Translations under genes and position numbers: made by a program
Shown here: piece after piece, positions 39,481-44,273 of the stretch
Layout of the letters: each line of letters begins with the position of its first letter
Position numbering within the stretch: the first letter of the stretch is position 1
Notes under the pieces: generated by a model
Told to the model about the DNA's origin: nothing
The model's database searches: none
Seen by the model: the letters and a program-made list of their open reading frames with translations, nothing else
Sequence record: NC_019408.1
Direction: 5' to 3' (one strand)
DNA length: 64,000 nt

Positions 39481-40133
39481 ACGAGGCGGTCTCCTGCTCC
39501 TAGCGCGCGCTCTCCAGCCTTTCCGAGGGCGATGCGCCGGACCTGCTGAGCAAGGGAATCCAGAGCGAGGCAGCGCTCTGCTCCCCAAAGAGTGGGCCAA
39601 GCGGTGCGGGCGGAAAGGCTCGGGGTCCGTGGCTCCATGCAATGCGCAGGAGAGACCGTGCTCCTTCTGACGCAGCGGGCGCCCGACGTTGCGGGTCGTG
39701 AGGCGAGGCCGGCCGAGATGATCAACGGCCTGGGGCGGGAGGGGCTTGACCTCTCCCGCATCCGCCTCTAGCGTCACCATCAATCAGGCGCAGCACTGCC
39801 TCACGATCGGACCATGTTCGGCTCCCGGTCCTGGAGCTTGGAAGCCTCACTCTGGAGCAGGACTGCCGCTGCGCCGGGGACGGTTTGGACGACGCACCCG
39901 TCCATGAGGCGAACGCCGGCCAAGACATGGCACGAGGCGTGACGGGGACCAGAGGTCCCACTCCATTCGCCGCGCCGGCGGCAGCAAAGCTCATTGAGCG
40001 GATGGTGGCACGGGCGCGAGCCCGATTTTGAGAGCCAGCGGAGAGCCACCTTCCTCCCTGGCCCGGCGACGACGAAAGCTGGGTGGCTGTAACCGCTCGT
40101 CTGAGGGATGCGTCCCCAAGATCATCAAGACGC
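39481..40133 (+). ncRNA. Candidate large ornate ncRNA (~650 nt), GOLLD/ROOL-class by size and context; family unverified
   Basis: Promoter immediately upstream, terminator downstream, no credible ORF. More than 10 helices of 6-10 bp, including crossing pairs. Confidence 0.7.
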
Positions 40134-40164
40134 AAAAGGCCCCGATCTCGCGATCGGGGCCTTT
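40134..40164. terminator. Bidirectional intrinsic terminator
   Basis: AAAAGGCCCCGATC-TCGC-GATCGGGGCCTTT between convergent RNA genes. Confidence 0.85.
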
Positions 40165-40171
40165 CAAATTC

Positions 40172-40260
40172 TGGAGCTACGGGAGGGACTCGAACCCTCA
40201 TAGGTGTCGCCACCAGCAGAGATTTGCAGTCCCGCGCCTAACCTCTCGGACCACCGTAGC
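40172..40260 (-). tRNA. tRNA-Cys(GCA) with a long variable arm, CCA encoded
   Basis: Acceptor GCTACGG/CCGTAGC, anticodon loop CT-GCA-AA, T arm GAGGG-TTCGAGT-CCCTC, U73, 18-nt variable region with GGTG-GCGA-CACC. Confidence 0.85.
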
Positions 40261-40440
40261 AAAACGGGACTGACGCCCGAAGGCCCAGCCCCGTTCCCGA
40301 CGACCCAAGGGAGTGCCGTAGCTGTCCCAAGGAGCACCGTGACGGCGTGGCAGGCGACTGAAGCCGTCAAGTCGAAGGGCTTCCGGCGCCGGTCACCCTA
40401 ACCTCCGGGCTCTTGCGAGCGCGAGTGAGGTCCTCCTACG
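40261..40440 (-). ncRNA. Structured ~180-nt leader or ncRNA co-transcribed with tRNA-Cys
   Basis: Minus-strand promoter TTGCGG, 17-nt spacer, TATAAG (-10 at 40452-40447). Hairpins with GCAA and UUCG tetraloops. Confidence 0.4.
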
Positions 40441-40542
40441 CCGATCCTTATAGCCGAGCCTTCACGCGTCCGCAACGAAAAATGTGTCGTGAGCGATGAC
40501 TTTTTCCTTGACACCTTCGATTAGGCTCTGGTAGAGAACAGG

Positions 40543-40945
40543 CATCGTTGTAATTCGGACAACGGAAACGGCGGCAAGACGGGGGTGCGATTCCCCCCGC
40601 CTCCACCACCACGAGCCCCTGGCGCTGGGAGTACGCGACTCCTGGGCAGGGAGTGTTACCCTGGCGGACCATTGCTGGCCCGAGCCAAAGGTAGCCGGGG
40701 GTTCTTGATGCTGGGGGCGATCAGCTTCGATTGGCGCATGTGACTGGAAGACGCAACGGTGGGTGACCTCCAGGCCAGCTTGCTGGTGATCGGGTCGAAG
40801 CAACAGAAATGTCGCTGCAAATGACAACGCTCCGTTCGCGGTGCGTGAAGCCATCGCCGCCTAATAAGCGGTAGAGGCGTGTCCCGGCGGACGCGCGTGT
40901 CACAAAAAGGCCCTGCATCTACGGACCGGGGCCAGTCCGCCACCC
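40543..40945 (+). ncRNA. ssrA: Two-piece (circularly permuted) tmRNA; tag peptide ANDNAPFAVREAIAA
   Basis: Acceptor piece has T arm GGGGG-TGCGATT-CCCCC and CGCCTCC-ACCA (40598-40608). Coding piece starts GGGGGCG (40713) and gives a G3:U70 pair. Tag reading frame 40817-40861 is followed by TAA TAA. Promoter TTGACA at 40508. End points are approximate. Confidence 0.92.
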
Positions 40946-41046
40946 ACCTTTCGCAGGCGGGGACCTAACTTCGGATGTCTGTCGGGCGATGGATGTTCAC
41001 CTTGGGTCCCCGTCTTCGAAAGGTGGTCGAAAGACCGTCTAAAAGA

Positions 41047-41125
41047 CGCGGGGTAGAGGAGTCCGGTTGTCCTCGTCTGGCTCATAACCAGAAGATCAGG
41101 GGTTCAAATCCCCTTCCCGCTCCCA
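41047..41125 (+). tRNA. tRNA-Met(CAU), initiator-like, CCA encoded
   Basis: CGCGGG start with a mismatched first pair, A11:U24, anticodon arm TCTGG-CTCATAA-CCAGA, TTCAAAT loop. Confidence 0.8.
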
Positions 41126-41383
41126 GGACCTGAACGCCGAGGGACTCCCAAAGAACGACGGCGTGACACGCTCGGAGAGAACGAGCACTGCAATCCGGGC
41201 TATGAGACCGTGATGTAGCGGACGCCGAAGCGAGAGCAGGCGTGACACCTGGAGAGACGGGACCAGTTTTCCAGGCCGCATGCCCGGCGCACAAGACCGC
41301 AGGCTTCGGCCGTAGGGCAGTGTCAGGGGATGAGGCTAGTCCCCGGCCCAAGGGCTAGGGCATGCGGCTTGGAAAGCTGGTTT
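41126..41383 (+). ncRNA. Candidate ~255-nt pseudoknotted ncRNA between two tRNAs
   Basis: 24-bp helix 41262-41285/41358-41381, duplicated ACGCC..GGCGTGACAC..GGAGAGA module, crossing pair GCACTGC/GCAGTGT. Confidence 0.6.
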
Positions 41384-41470
41384 GGTACGGTGGCTCGACA
41401 GGTAAGGCATCGGCCTCATAAGCCGAGGGACTAGCTCCCGATCCTGGTTCAAATCCAGGTCGTACCTCCA
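41384..41470 (+). tRNA. tRNA with CAU anticodon (Met or Ile2) and a long variable arm, CCA encoded
   Basis: Acceptor GGTACGG/TCGTACC, anticodon arm TCGGC-CTCATAA-GCCGA, variable arm GGGA-CTAGC-TCCC, T arm CCTGG-TTCAAAT-CCAGG, U73. Confidence 0.85.
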
Positions 41471-41477
41471 AAAAGCA

Positions 41478-41509
41478 GGCGGCCGTCGGGGCGACCCGGC
41501 GGCCGTTTT
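41478..41509 (+). terminator. Intrinsic terminator of the tmRNA/tRNA transcript
   Basis: GCGGCCGTCGGG-GCGA-CCCGGCGGCCGT followed by a T-tract. Confidence 0.75.
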
Positions 41510-41511
41510 GC

Positions 41512-41551
41512 TGTCGTGAATCTTGACACTCCGGGTTGAGCTAGGCATTAT
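41512..41551 (+). promoter_or_regulatory. 17-bp motif plus promoter of the cadherin-repeat gene
   Basis: TGTCGTGAATCTTGACA 41512-41528, 17-nt spacer, CATTAT. Confidence 0.7.
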
Positions 41552-41579
41552 GCCGCTTGACTTTCAGGAGATTTGTGTC

Positions 41580-44273
41580 GTGGCTCGATCCACTCGTTCC
41601 GTCGCGTTGGCGCGCGTCGTCACGCCCGCGCAACTGAAGCGCGACATCCGTATTCGCCGTGCTGACGAACTGGCTGGGCCGAGCGGCCCCAATGGCGTGG
41701 TCCTGATCGGGATCACCAACGACCGCGTCATGGAAAACAGCGCACCCGGCACGCCCGTGGGCGACATCTTCACGATCCCGGCCGGCGCCGACATCGAACT
41801 GGTCACCACCGGCGGCAATCGCTTCGACCTCGTCGGCTCGACCCTGGTCGTGGGCTCCACGCCCCTGGACCACGAGGCCACGCCCGTCGTCAACGTCCTG
41901 GTCCATGCCGAGTACGCGGGATCGACGCTGGAGACCACGCTGCCGATCACGATCCTCAACGAGACCGAGGTGATCGGCGTCACCCTCTCGGCCAACACCG
42001 TGCTGGAGAACTCGGCCGCCGGCGTGACGATCGGGACCCTGACGCCCAACCCTGCGGACGCCACGCTCCAGGTCGTCGGCCCCTATGCCGGCTACTTCAC
42101 GGTCGCGGCCGGCAACATCCTGAAGACCGGGTCGACGCCGACCGACTACGAGACCGCGCCCAACCTGACCGATCACTCCTACCCGGTGACGATCGCCGCC
42201 ACCCGCCAGGGTGAGACGGCCAATTTCACCATCCCGGTCTTCGTGCTGAACCAAGTCGAGATCACCAACATCACGCTCTCGGCCAACCACATCGCCGAGG
42301 GCTCGGGCAGCGGGACGGTGGTGGGCGGCCTGACCTCCACGCCGTCGGGCGCGACCTTCTCGCTGGTCGACAACGCCGGCTCGCGCTTCGCCCTGGCCGG
42401 CAACAACGTCGTCGCCGGCAGCGTCGCCACCAACTACGACACCGCCACCCAGCACGACATCACCGTGCGCGGCACGATCGGCAACGAGAGCCTCAACAAG
42501 ACCTTCACGATCCTGGTCGACAACGTCAACTCGATCAGCGACATCACCCTGACGGGCGCGTCGGTCAACGAGAACACCGCCCCCGGCGTCACCGTCGGGA
42601 CCTTCGCGACCGTGCCGCCCGGCCTGCCGCTGACCCTCACCGACACCGCCGGCAACCGGTTCGCCTTGTCGGGCAACACCCTCCAGACGGGCGCAACGGC
42701 GACCAACTACGAGGTTGCCCAGAGCCATCAGGTCACCGCCCAGGCGACGTTTGGCAGCGACACCCTGTCGAAGAACTTCACGATCAACGTGGTCGACATC
42801 GACGAGATCAACGACATCACGCTCTCGGGCAACACGGTGACCGAGAACACGGCCGCCGGCGTCACCGTCGGGACCCTGGCGTCGGTCCCCACCGGGGCGA
42901 CCTTCTCGATCATCTCGCAGTCCCCGGCGGGCTCCTATTTCGTCATCAACGGCAACGCGCTCCAGACGGGGGCGACGCCGACGGACTACGAGAACGCGAT
43001 CTCCCACACCGTCAACATCCGAGGCACGCGCCAGAGCGAGACCTACGATGAGGCGTTCACGATCAACGTGACCAACATCACCGAGATCAGCAGCGTCTCG
43101 CTCGACAACCTGTCGATCAACGAGAACTCGCCGCAGGGTACGACCGTCGGTAACTTGACGTCGTCGCCGGCCGGGGCCAGCTTCTCGCTCACCGACAATG
43201 CGGGCGGGCGGTTCCAGATCAGCGGCGGCGTGCTTCAGGCCGGATCGGTGGCGACCAACTACGAGGCCGCGACCAGCCATTCGGTCACGGTGCGCGGCAC
43301 GCGCCTGGGCGAGACCAAGGATCAGCAGTTCACGATCTCCGTCAACGATCTCGTCGAACTGAGCACCATCAGCCTCTCGGGCTCGTCGATCGACGAGAAC
43401 TCGGGACCGGGGACTGGCGTCGGAACGCTCTCCTCGTCGCCGGCCGGCGCGAGCTTCAGCCTCACCAACAGCGCGGGCAACCGTTTTGCGCTGTCGGGCA
43501 ACACGATTGTCGCCGGTTCGGTCGCCACCGACTACGAAACCGCGACCAGCCACCAGATCACCGTCCAAGGCACGCGCCTGGGCGAGACCAAGAGCCAAAA
43601 CTTCACGATCAGCGTCAACGACGTGAACGAAGCCCCGCCCGCGCCTGATCTGGACAGCTTCGGCCTGTCGGGCTCGTCGATCGACGAGAACTCGGGAGCG
43701 GGCACCTTTGTGGGCACCTTCTCCTCGTCGCCGTCGGGCGCCAGCTATGTCCTGACCAACAGCGCGGGCGGCCGGTTCGCGATCTCTGGTTCCTCCCTGG
43801 TCGCTGGCTCGACGCCGACGGACTACGAGACCGCGACCAGCCATTCGATCTCGGTCCAGGCGACGCGCGGCGCGACGACGCTCTCCGACAGCTTCACGAT
43901 CACCGTCAACAACTTGGCCGAAGGCGGTGGCGGAAGCCCGACCCTGACCCCTGGGGTGAGCAACGGCAGCTTGACGGTGTTCGCGTCCAATCCTGGGGAG
44001 CAGGCGGTCTCGGGTTACGTGACTGTTTCGATCAGCCAAGGCACCGGGCCTTATTCGTTCGATTGGGAGCAGGTCAGCGGCTATGCCAACATGTACGTGG
44101 CCTACGGCACCGTGAACGGCAAGCCCAACGATTCTGGCTACTTCTACCTGGACCAGGGCGATCGTCCGTCCGACCGCACCACCATCTGGCGCTGTAAGGT
44201 CACCGACTCCGTCGGCAACTACGGGTACACGAACAACGTCACGATCCGCCTCGTCCAGTCCAGCCCGACCTAA
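41580..44273 (+). CDS. Protein with eight tandem cadherin-like repeats and a distinct C-terminal domain
   Basis: ~93-aa repeats with ITLS...ENS..G..VG.L, F.L.G and DYE.A..H motifs. GTG 41580 follows AGGAG. Confidence 0.8.
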   Translation: MARSTRSVALARVVTPAQLKRDIRIRRADELAGPSGPNGVVLIGITNDRVMENSAPGTPVGDIFTIPAGADIELVTTGGNRFDLVGSTLVVGSTPLDHEATPVVNVLVHAEYAGSTLETTLPITILNETEVIGVTLSANTVLENSAAGVTIGTLTPNPADATLQVVGPYAGYFTVAAGNILKTGSTPTDYETAPNLTDHSYPVTIAATRQGETANFTIPVFVLNQVEITNITLSANHIAEGSGSGTVVGGLTSTPSGATFSLVDNAGSRFALAGNNVVAGSVATNYDTATQHDITVRGTIGNESLNKTFTILVDNVNSISDITLTGASVNENTAPGVTVGTFATVPPGLPLTLTDTAGNRFALSGNTLQTGATATNYEVAQSHQVTAQATFGSDTLSKNFTINVVDIDEINDITLSGNTVTENTAAGVTVGTLASVPTGATFSIISQSPAGSYFVINGNALQTGATPTDYENAISHTVNIRGTRQSETYDEAFTINVTNITEISSVSLDNLSINENSPQGTTVGNLTSSPAGASFSLTDNAGGRFQISGGVLQAGSVATNYEAATSHSVTVRGTRLGETKDQQFTISVNDLVELSTISLSGSSIDENSGPGTGVGTLSSSPAGASFSLTNSAGNRFALSGNTIVAGSVATDYETATSHQITVQGTRLGETKSQNFTISVNDVNEAPPAPDLDSFGLSGSSIDENSGAGTFVGTFSSSPSGASYVLTNSAGGRFAISGSSLVAGSTPTDYETATSHSISVQATRGATTLSDSFTITVNNLAEGGGGSPTLTPGVSNGSLTVFASNPGEQAVSGYVTVSISQGTGPYSFDWEQVSGYANMYVAYGTVNGKPNDSGYFYLDQGDRPSDRTTIWRCKVTDSVGNYGYTNNVTIRLVQSSPT

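Follow-up and report, generated by a model that had tools for sequence, protein, structure and literature searches.

A composite structured RNA between two tRNA genes of Caulobacter phage CcrRogue

A structured RNA in the tmRNA-tRNA locus

The 64,000-nucleotide stretch of record NC_019408.1 analysed here (the window) belongs to Caulobacter phage CcrRogue and contains, between two transfer RNA (tRNA) genes, a 258-nt spacer on the + strand (41126-41383) that is the subject of this report. Window coordinates are converted to those of record JX100814 by adding 62000, and window 40400-41600 is 100% identical to JX100814 102400-103600. The + strand of the locus carries, in order, a circularly permuted transfer-messenger RNA (tmRNA) gene, an initiator-like tRNA(CAU), the spacer, a tRNA(CAU) with a long variable arm and a terminator-like hairpin, an arrangement that looks like a single non-coding transcription unit whose parts would be co-transcribed. 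GenBank annotates only a tRNA-Cys and two tRNA-Met at this locus of JX100814, leaving the tmRNA unannotated. The spacer lies between two tRNAs, as the first-pass annotation of this DNA had stated, and they border it exactly: ARAGORN places the initiator-like tRNA (anticodon CAU, 1-72 mismatch; Rfam tRNA 50 bits) at 41047-41125 and the long-arm tRNA (U73; Rfam tRNA 47.1 bits) at 41384-41470, both on the + strand and both with an encoded CCA.

The spacer is a genuine structured non-coding RNA of the + strand. Its minimum free energy is -123.8 kcal/mol (z = -5.7), a stability equalled by none of 200 shuffled sequences, and the reverse complement gives a z of -1.3. The spacer is kept in 26 Caulobacter phage records, none of which annotates a feature under the match, and it is 82% identical between CcrRogue and phiCbK, two phages with a genome-wide identity of 62.6% (PMC3556154). 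Caulobacter phages have spacers of 243-498 nt, and the Brevundimonas phages unrelated ones of 134-168 nt. A scan against Rfam 15 returned no match for 41126-41383 at the gathering score and none at E<=10 in a 3-kb search, and a 271-nt search at E<=10 gave just two 12-bit noise matches to long non-coding RNAs. The proposal of a novel RNA is borne out in that the spacer is structured, belongs to the tRNA strand and has no Rfam 15 family; it is not borne out for one single RNA, since the spacer RNA combines two modules, each with an evolutionary distribution of its own. Both families are absent from Rfam 15 and from searchable papers, one being lineage-specific and the other widespread. The searchable literature describes neither element, the 8,495 unnamed IMG/VR RNA candidates of Fremin et al. 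2023 (PMC10690425) having been left out of the comparison, and the widespread module may be among those candidates.

A protein-coding role for the minus strand is effectively refuted. Open frames of 61-89 codons do exist there (41082-41351, 41096-41281 and 41336-41548), and the record of phage BL64 (PV745554.1) has 'hypothetical protein (x2)' somewhere under a 1.2-kb match that spans this locus. However, such frames are expected by chance at 65% GC, they have no Pfam or PHROG match and they overlap the two tRNA genes; the spacer lengths of close relatives (258, 250 and 243 nt) differ by amounts that are not multiples of three, and the substitutions preserve + strand base pairs and G-U wobbles.

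Several further features surround the spacer. The tmRNA gene (40546-41046, + strand) is recognised through an Rfam RF04321 match at 40546-40864 (88.2 bits, E 1e-15), and would extend from there up to the next tRNA; its parts are ordered as acceptor piece, structured intervening segment and coding piece with the tag ...ANDNAPFAVREAIAA. The intervening segment (~100 nt) is a conserved multi-hairpin junction with an 11-bp closing helix in CcrRogue, CcrBL10, phiCbK and BL57. A TTGACA hexamer read from the sequence at 40508-40513 (+ strand) may serve as a -35 promoter element, and similar TTGACA/TTGACT hexamers lie upstream of the tmRNA in Bajun, Kikimora and CcrSC. At the other end, inspection identified the terminator-like hairpin (41480-41509, + strand; 11 pairs, GC-rich, GCGA loop, then UUUU), which is unlisted in the consensus scan; that scan places a promoter-like site for the next gene at 41523-41551. 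The tRNA-Cys(GCA) lies on the minus strand (40172-40260; ARAGORN and Rfam). Both this tRNA (89 nt) and the second tRNA(CAU) (87 nt) combine a long variable arm with discriminator U73, a class II shape that is atypical of Cys or Met/Ile tRNAs; this long-arm tRNA shape is kept in phiCbK-like and Brevundimonas phages, and the CcrSC and CcrBL9 counterparts are 77 nt long. About 1 kb upstream of the tmRNA operon, GOLLD RNAs are found on the minus strand in phiCbK (165 bits; L003:8-494, L numbers being our own locus handles) and in Bajun (104 bits; L011:795-1213). The phiCbK GOLLD RNA encloses a tRNA-Gly, and the equivalent place in CcrRogue has no GOLLD match.

Two modules with separate distributions

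The 3' domain of the spacer RNA (41262-41381, + strand), defined by alignment A1 and covariance model R1, is a four-way junction. Its long closing helix P1 (24 bp, 41262-41285/41358-41381) encloses P2 (GGCGC/GYGUC, 41286-41290/41320-41324), with a hypervariable interior that includes a UUCG hairpin; P3 (41326-41344), a 6-bp stem with the invariant loop GAGGCUA; and P4 (41345-41356), with a variable tip. Single A residues occupy the P2/P3 and P4/P1 boundaries. The first-pass annotation had seen the outline of this fold: its 24-bp helix with two G-U pairs corresponds to P1 (92% Watson-Crick), and the enclosed hairpins that it named are present as GGC-UUCG-GCC (41302-41311) and GGGGAU/GUCCCC (41326-41344). 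Alignment A1 comprises 11 sequences from at least four genera (CcrRogue, CcrBL10, RBC8, phiCbK, Swift, Ccr10, BL57, CcrSC, CcrBL9, Bajun and Kikimora), and its consensus has 38 pairs, with 97% of cells paired and 18 pairs changed on both sides. These values for pairing and double changes were reached by none of 500 shuffles, and slid registers drop to 25-52% paired. G-U cells outnumber A-C cells by 62 to 2, and therefore selection acts on the + strand RNA. Among the 11 phages the P3 loop and the junction nucleotides are invariant, and the variation in the stems is compensatory.

R1 finds exactly one copy of the 3' domain in the 64-kb window, at 41262-41381, with a score of 128.6 bits that includes the window sequence's own contribution as one row of the model's alignment. 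The features that define a Dolichocephalovirinae four-way-junction domain, namely the junction C-GGC...GUC-A-G...C-GGC...GCY-A-GGG and the P3 loop GAGGCUA, are all found there. The domain is specific to this phiCbK-like subfamily, and exact-pattern scans for the P3 hairpin in IMG/VR, metagenomes and GTDB genomes returned only known isolates and stemless chance matches.

The pseudoknot that had been proposed to link the two halves of the spacer, GCACUGC (41185-41191) with GCAGUGU (41317-41323), did not survive comparison. The strings are present and complementary in CcrRogue, yet in a seven-phage full-length alignment none of the seven pairs shows a compensatory change, the pair G65-C194 (alignment columns 65/194) exists in CcrRogue only, and CcrBL10, RBC8 and Ccr10 have lost or replaced the 3' arm. 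Moreover, the proposed arms overlap the conserved helices P2 and H2, the latter belonging to the 5' domain. Orthologous spacers thus conserve the closing helix, with compensatory changes, but not this pseudoknot, and we regard GCACUGC/GCAGUGU as a chance complementarity within a hypervariable loop. Another long-range helix that we considered, UAGCGGACG/CGUCCGCUA, is not general: it occurs in phiCbK and Ccr10, weakly in CcrColossus, and is absent from Swift, BL57 and CcrRogue.

The 5' domain (41129-41261) is ordered as H1, GACAC, H2 (loop GAGAGAA), H3 (loop GCUAUGAGA), GUAGCGG, H4, GACA and H5 (loop GAGAGA). Column identity over three genera is 79-82% (alignments A2 and A3), with invariant positions that are mostly unpaired, in loops and linkers, and with compensatory changes in H2, H3 and H4. 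The two tandem units of the first-pass annotation are readily recognised here, GGCGTGACAC occurring exactly twice, at 41160 and 41239, each time with an ACGCC/GGCGU hairpin before it and a GAGAGA(A)-loop hairpin after it. Both units are copies of a small module that is widespread among phages. Copy 1 (41129-41189, + strand) consists of stem A (CCU 41129-41131/AGG 41140-41142), stem B, or H1 (41134-41139/41159-41164), the linker GACAC (41165-41169) and H2 (41170-41186, loop GAGAGAA), and draws on a covariance-model match, compensatory change in H2 and family-wide support for stem A. Copy 2 (41219-41264, + strand) consists of H4 (41222-41243), in which CcrBL10 has a C-G to U-A compensatory change, the linker GACA (41244-41247) and H5 (41248-41261, loop GAGAGA).

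Between the copies lies H3 (41193-41214, + strand; alignments A2 and A3), an AUCCGG/CCG(U)GAU hairpin that shows an A-U to G-C change between genera and has a 9-nt loop with an invariant UAUGAG. This 6-mer is exactly complementary to CUCAUA, the anticodon-loop sequence that the two flanking tRNAs share, the one match that remained from a screen of the operon for complements of the invariant loops, and it is invariant in seven phages of three genera while neighbouring loop positions vary. It is conceivable that the spacer binds tRNA-Met in the manner of a T-box, with H3 pairing to the anticodon loop and the AGAGA loops docking on the tRNA elbow; T-box Stem I carries T-loop motifs, of which AGAGA-type loops are reminiscent. 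We nevertheless consider a tRNA binder very unlikely. The 6-mer was spotted post hoc, with a rough estimate of p ~0.01-0.05; the similar AUGAGG in P3 is no display of an AUG, its A and U being covarying stem pairs; H3 is absent from CcrSC, CcrBL9, Bajun and Kikimora, and its 6 bp are too short for the anticodon-to-elbow span; and no Rfam family, a set that should cover T-box leaders, matches at E<=10, so that the likeness to a T-box leader, defined by a Stem I with a specifier loop and an antiterminator bulge UGGN that pairs with NCCA, comes down to a 6-nt complementarity between loops. The complementarity between GUGACA and GUGUCAC of the tmRNA is unrelated, as Bajun keeps a similar tmRNA CUGUCAC without the module.

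The widespread module begins with a short stem A and a loop AAACGYCA that pairs with a downstream GRCGU (stem B). Next come GACA, invariant and single-stranded, and a 5-bp hairpin whose loop is GAGAGA; a conserved dinucleotide AC stands directly 3' of the hairpin. Because stem A flanks AAACGYCA, the ACGYC/GRCGU helix is a pseudoknot helix, and the module is a compact H-type pseudoknot plus a hairpin. A scan of IMG/VR with the pattern CGTGACA-N5-GGAGAGA found at least 119 loci. Among the 117 matches listed, a perfect 5-bp stem surrounds the GAGAGA hexaloop in 62, against ~2% by chance, and four of the five pairs are present in 19 more. The IMG/VR instances share the upstream helix ACGYC/GRCGU, in which the fourth pair is U-G, C-G, U-A, G-U, G-C or A-U; the module stems show covariation and a G-U bias, and stem A has a mean of 2.9 bp versus 2.0 +/- 0.17 bp with shuffled partners. 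Covariance model R2, built from 30 environmental IMG/VR phage sequences and no Caulobacter phage, matches the window at 41131-41189 (35.9 bits, E 1.5e-7) and 41219-41264 (28.7 bits, E 1.1e-5), and recovers the corresponding units in every relative, along with weaker variant copies elsewhere in those genomes. Both CcrRogue units thus have the ACGYC...GRCGU helix, the single-stranded GACA, a 4-5-bp GAGAGA(N) hairpin and a significant R2 score.

Roughly 25 of the 81 good instances among the matches listed belong to tRNA arrays and share the orientation of the tRNAs; they usually occupy spacers of 56-80 nt ahead of the first or second tRNA. In many other cases the module stands 25-50 nt before the start codon of one of various unrelated genes, which encode a DNA polymerase, a Sak4-like protein, a membrane protein or proteins of no known kind. 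Tandem copies beyond the Caulobacter phages occur at L142, L143 and L045. The best example in a cultured phage outside the Caulobacter phages is that of Rhizobium phage B1VFA (MT770738; L146:276-427; R2 40.8 bits), where the module directly adjoins an 84-nt tRNA-Cys with which the genome record begins; B1VFA was also the only hit when the module was compared with named phages by BLAST, a method too insensitive for a 42-nt motif. Rfam 15 has no match to the module in 12 IMG/VR loci or in L087, and the 59 module loci examined among the matches listed share no neighbour protein, no family occurring in more than seven of them. In IMG/VR contigs L031 and L052 the module lies in tRNA clusters with a one-piece tmRNA gene (Rfam 127 and 84 bits), an arrangement that echoes the tmRNA-tRNA-module association of CcrRogue. 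A third, variant copy is seen in the window at 39885-39960 (+ strand), reading CGAACGCC...GGCGUGAC-G-GGGACC-AGA-GGUCCC (R2 16.2 bits, E 0.02). It is kept in RBC8 and CcrBL10, has stronger counterparts in CcrColossus and CcrPW that end exactly at the 5' end of tRNA-Cys, and overlaps the annotated minus-strand gene gp125 (39722-40135), a possible miscall for which Pfam and PHROG gave no match.

Several roles for the module were considered and rejected. A gene-specific riboswitch is ruled out by the heterogeneous downstream genes. The resemblance of GTGACA-N5-GGAGAGA to SP6/T7-type promoters (GTGACAC-TATA-GAAGAG) fails on the covariation of both hairpins, with G-U pairs, and on positions -4 to -1, which are GC-rich stem positions; an RNase P minihelix (hairpin + RCCA) fails on a CCA that follows the hairpin in just 12 of 53 cases, and H2 as an intrinsic terminator on inconsistent U-runs. 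Since the module is shared by unrelated phages and found both at the heads of tRNA arrays and in assorted gene leaders, it most likely acts in cis on its own transcript. It could serve as a processing, end-protection or elongation signal or in self-cleavage, relying either on a partner common to many hosts or on the RNA itself.

Self-cleavage would make the module a new small ribozyme that cuts polycistronic phage transcripts, by analogy with the theta ribozymes. A size of 42-60 nt, the combination of pseudoknot and hairpin, and the strictly conserved unpaired GACA, GAGAGA and AC would all suit a ribozyme, and an intergenic element that is found beside tRNAs or in leaders, sometimes in tandem, in unrelated phages and with no common neighbour protein has a distribution typical of small ribozymes, with a precedent in PMC10879173. 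Against this, no Rfam ribozyme family matches at E<=10, the topology is on inspection unlike the HDV-like double pseudoknot, and the module edges do not coincide exactly with tRNA ends, lying 0-30 nt away upstream and 2-13 nt away downstream. We therefore think a ribozyme unlikely.

Placement beside tRNA-processing sites and a possible mechanism

The genomic position of the 3' domain is the most informative result. In eight phages 1-3 nt separate the closing helix from the start of the tRNA or tmRNA coding piece that follows. From the end of P1 to the downstream tRNA there are 2 nt in CcrRogue, CcrBL10, RBC8 and BL57, and 1 nt in CcrSC and CcrBL9, where the tRNA is tRNA-Met. In the Brevundimonas phages Bajun and Kikimora, for which a 28-nt exact match was the first clue to homology and R1 gives 85 bits (L011:1809-1924) and 88 bits (L023:2041-2165), respectively, the 3' domain is the intervening segment of the permuted tmRNA gene, starting directly after the CCA of the acceptor piece and ending 2-3 nt before the coding piece. 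This segment is known to be cut from permuted tmRNA precursors (PMC11915505). In two independent contexts, then, the domain would form part of an excised RNA bounded by tRNA-type processing sites, which supports the suggestion of the first-pass annotation that tRNA processing releases the spacer. Release by tRNA-processing enzymes is plausible and fits the comparative context; the more exact claim, that a ~255-nt species is cut out precisely, keeps the standing of a prediction.

The reading that we favour, with a probability of about 0.5, is that of a composite, modular spacer RNA that is excised. For such an RNA we infer transcription in a single unit, cleavage, stability and activity along the following lines. 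RNase P would cut at 41383/41384 and so create the 3' end, and 3' maturation of the upstream tRNA would create the 5' end, giving a product of ~255 nt, or of ~120 nt if there is an additional cut between the domains. The 24-bp P1 would keep the 3' end base-paired, so that the excised piece could resist exonucleases and persist; the GAGGCUA loop and the junction would form a binding surface for a partner, and the small module would act in cis on its own transcript. PhageExpressionAtlas lists a transcriptome of phiCbK infection (PMC13478754).

Some observations weigh against this reading. Between the helix and the tRNA, phiCbK, Swift, Ccr10 and CcrColossus have 106-150 nt or more of other sequence, which differs from one of these phages to another, and adjacency to the RNase P site is therefore not universal. 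CcrPW has a plain long hairpin in place of the junction, so the four-way junction is dispensable in one genus, and the interior of the CcrColossus domain is divergent. No complement of the GAGGCUA loop was found in the operon or in the window to act as its partner, and the annotation of RBC8 is too thin to show RNA-binding partners. As for the module, perfect stems were the selection criterion for the R2 alignment; its 100% pairing is therefore circular, and evidence comes only from the diversity of its pair types.

CcrPW also bears on a rival explanation, in which the element acts purely in cis, P1 being an RNase III-type entry site or a folding insulator and the excised fragments waste. The long closing helix is the most persistent feature of the domain, and in CcrPW just a long hairpin is retained; at 22-24 bp, the near-perfect helix has the length that RNase III needs; and the intervening segments of Caulobacter phage tmRNAs, unrelated in sequence, are also multi-hairpin junctions with a closing helix of ~11 bp. 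Yet the stems drift from genus to genus but the 7 nt of the P3 loop and the nucleotides of the junction do not change, an invariance that a plain double-stranded RNA site would not need, and tRNAs in phage arrays are normally a few nucleotides apart, without such elements. We see processing or insulation in cis as possible but not probable.

The additional sequence of phiCbK has features of its own. The 3' extension of its spacer (L003:1842-1947; also in Karma and Ccr10) is a circularly permuted tRNA-like unit in the order T-arm, loop-closed acceptor, D-arm and 4-bp anticodon-stem remnant, with a weak match to YrlA (L003:1867-1934; 29.7 bits, E 0.005). CcrRogue is without this extension. The unit may be either a Y-RNA-like module or what is left of a tandem tRNA duplication, and T-arm-like hairpins are seen in the CcrColossus, CcrPW and Kikimora spacers as well. 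Such tRNA-like fragments in relatives raise the idea that the spacers as a whole are decayed tRNA or tmRNA genes, now functionless. We disfavour this idea and find it scarcely credible, since the CcrRogue spacer has no T-loop or D-loop motif, is conserved above the genome average (PMC3556154), shows many compensatory changes and includes a module common to unrelated phages.

A bolder version of the excised-RNA reading would treat the module as a widespread autonomous phage RNA device, either a self-cleaving ribozyme or a protein-independent element, that punctuates and protects untranslated tRNA arrays and operon leaders, with the four-way junction as a stable, excised RNA that acts in trans during phiCbK-like infection. 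A protein-independent module might target universal host machinery, for example RNA polymerase or a ribonuclease. We put this version forward tentatively, as fairly unlikely.

Comparison with known systems

The phiCbK-like phages are standard tools for Caulobacter cell biology, and the locus described here combines a tmRNA and two unusual tRNAs with a 258-nt RNA that is under strong structural selection. One building block of this RNA is common to dozens of unrelated uncultivated phages and Rhizobium phage B1VFA, always placed where the transcript of a tRNA array or operon starts. Being common, small, sharply conserved and protein-free, this module resembles the small self-cleaving ribozymes of phages in its distribution. 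That the 3' domain occurs in a tRNA spacer and also in the part of a permuted tmRNA that is thrown away suggests that it shuttles between the two, and that the 'waste' of tRNA processing may offer a slot for functional RNA.

Among known pseudoknotted RNAs, the HDV-like theta ribozymes, which adjoin tRNA genes in many uncultivated phages (PMC10879173), come closest to the module, both being small and conserved, placed in gaps by phage tRNAs and without an associated protein. However, G1 of a theta ribozyme directly follows the tRNA 3' end, and its fold is a nested double pseudoknot (P1, P1.1, P2, P3) with a catalytic C in J4/2, whereas the module has an H-type pseudoknot and a GAGAGA hairpin, lies at variable distances from tRNAs and has no HDV-like match in Rfam; in minimal array modules the strands follow the order A5'-B5'-A3'-B3' and then the hairpin, which is not the HDV order. 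In size and position, the only respects in which we compared them, the module is also like the put RNA of phage HK022, a phage-borne element of ~70 nt with two stem-loops near a promoter and no dedicated protein (PMC9378689). put is known from about ten lambdoid sequences, binds Escherichia coli RNA polymerase and is a cis-acting antiterminator (PMC9378689). GOLLD and ROOL RNAs are likewise phage-borne and adjoin or enclose tRNAs, but the spacer RNA is much smaller, differs in architecture and has no homology to them, the window giving no GOLLD or ROOL match in Rfam. YrlA RNAs are encoded within ~4 kb of a Ro60 (TROVE) gene (PMC4201824). The CcrRogue window gives no YrlA match (gathering score 69 bits), and by annotation names alone no neighbour at up to 4 kb is called Ro or TROVE, the products listed there being a T5 A1-like protein, a methylase, a cadherin-like protein, a helicase and hypothetical proteins.

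The intervening segment of permuted tmRNA has the closest ties to the 3' domain: the CcrRogue domain is homologous to the Bajun and Kikimora segments, and in both settings a tRNA-like 3' end and/or an RNase P site forms the bounds and a helix joins the ends. The CcrRogue domain differs in its fusion to another domain and in its location between two tRNAs, outside the tmRNA; rather than being placed between the acceptor-piece CCA and the coding piece, it is at least 400 nt downstream of the tmRNA and follows a tRNA. Moreover, intervening segments are usually deemed disposable, and we know of none that carries a conserved four-way junction with an invariant loop. The spacer RNAs of E. coli tRNA operons (the 3' external transcribed spacer of glyW-cysT-leuZ and the metZWV spacers) are also maturation by-products that persist and function, but they are short, weakly structured and act by simple pairing with small RNAs, whereas the CcrRogue spacer RNA is large and highly structured, with no target complementarity found. 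T4 species 1 and 2 RNAs (rnaC/rnaD), of ~120-140 nt and restricted to T4-like phages, are structured non-tRNA RNAs that are co-transcribed with tRNAs and matured by the tRNA machinery; compared by description only, they have no apparent relationship to the spacer RNA. By analogy with these cases, the spacer RNA behaves like other by-products of tRNA maturation that persist, among them the T4 species 1 and 2 RNAs, the tRNA spacers that act as sponges of small RNAs, and the intervening segment of tmRNA.

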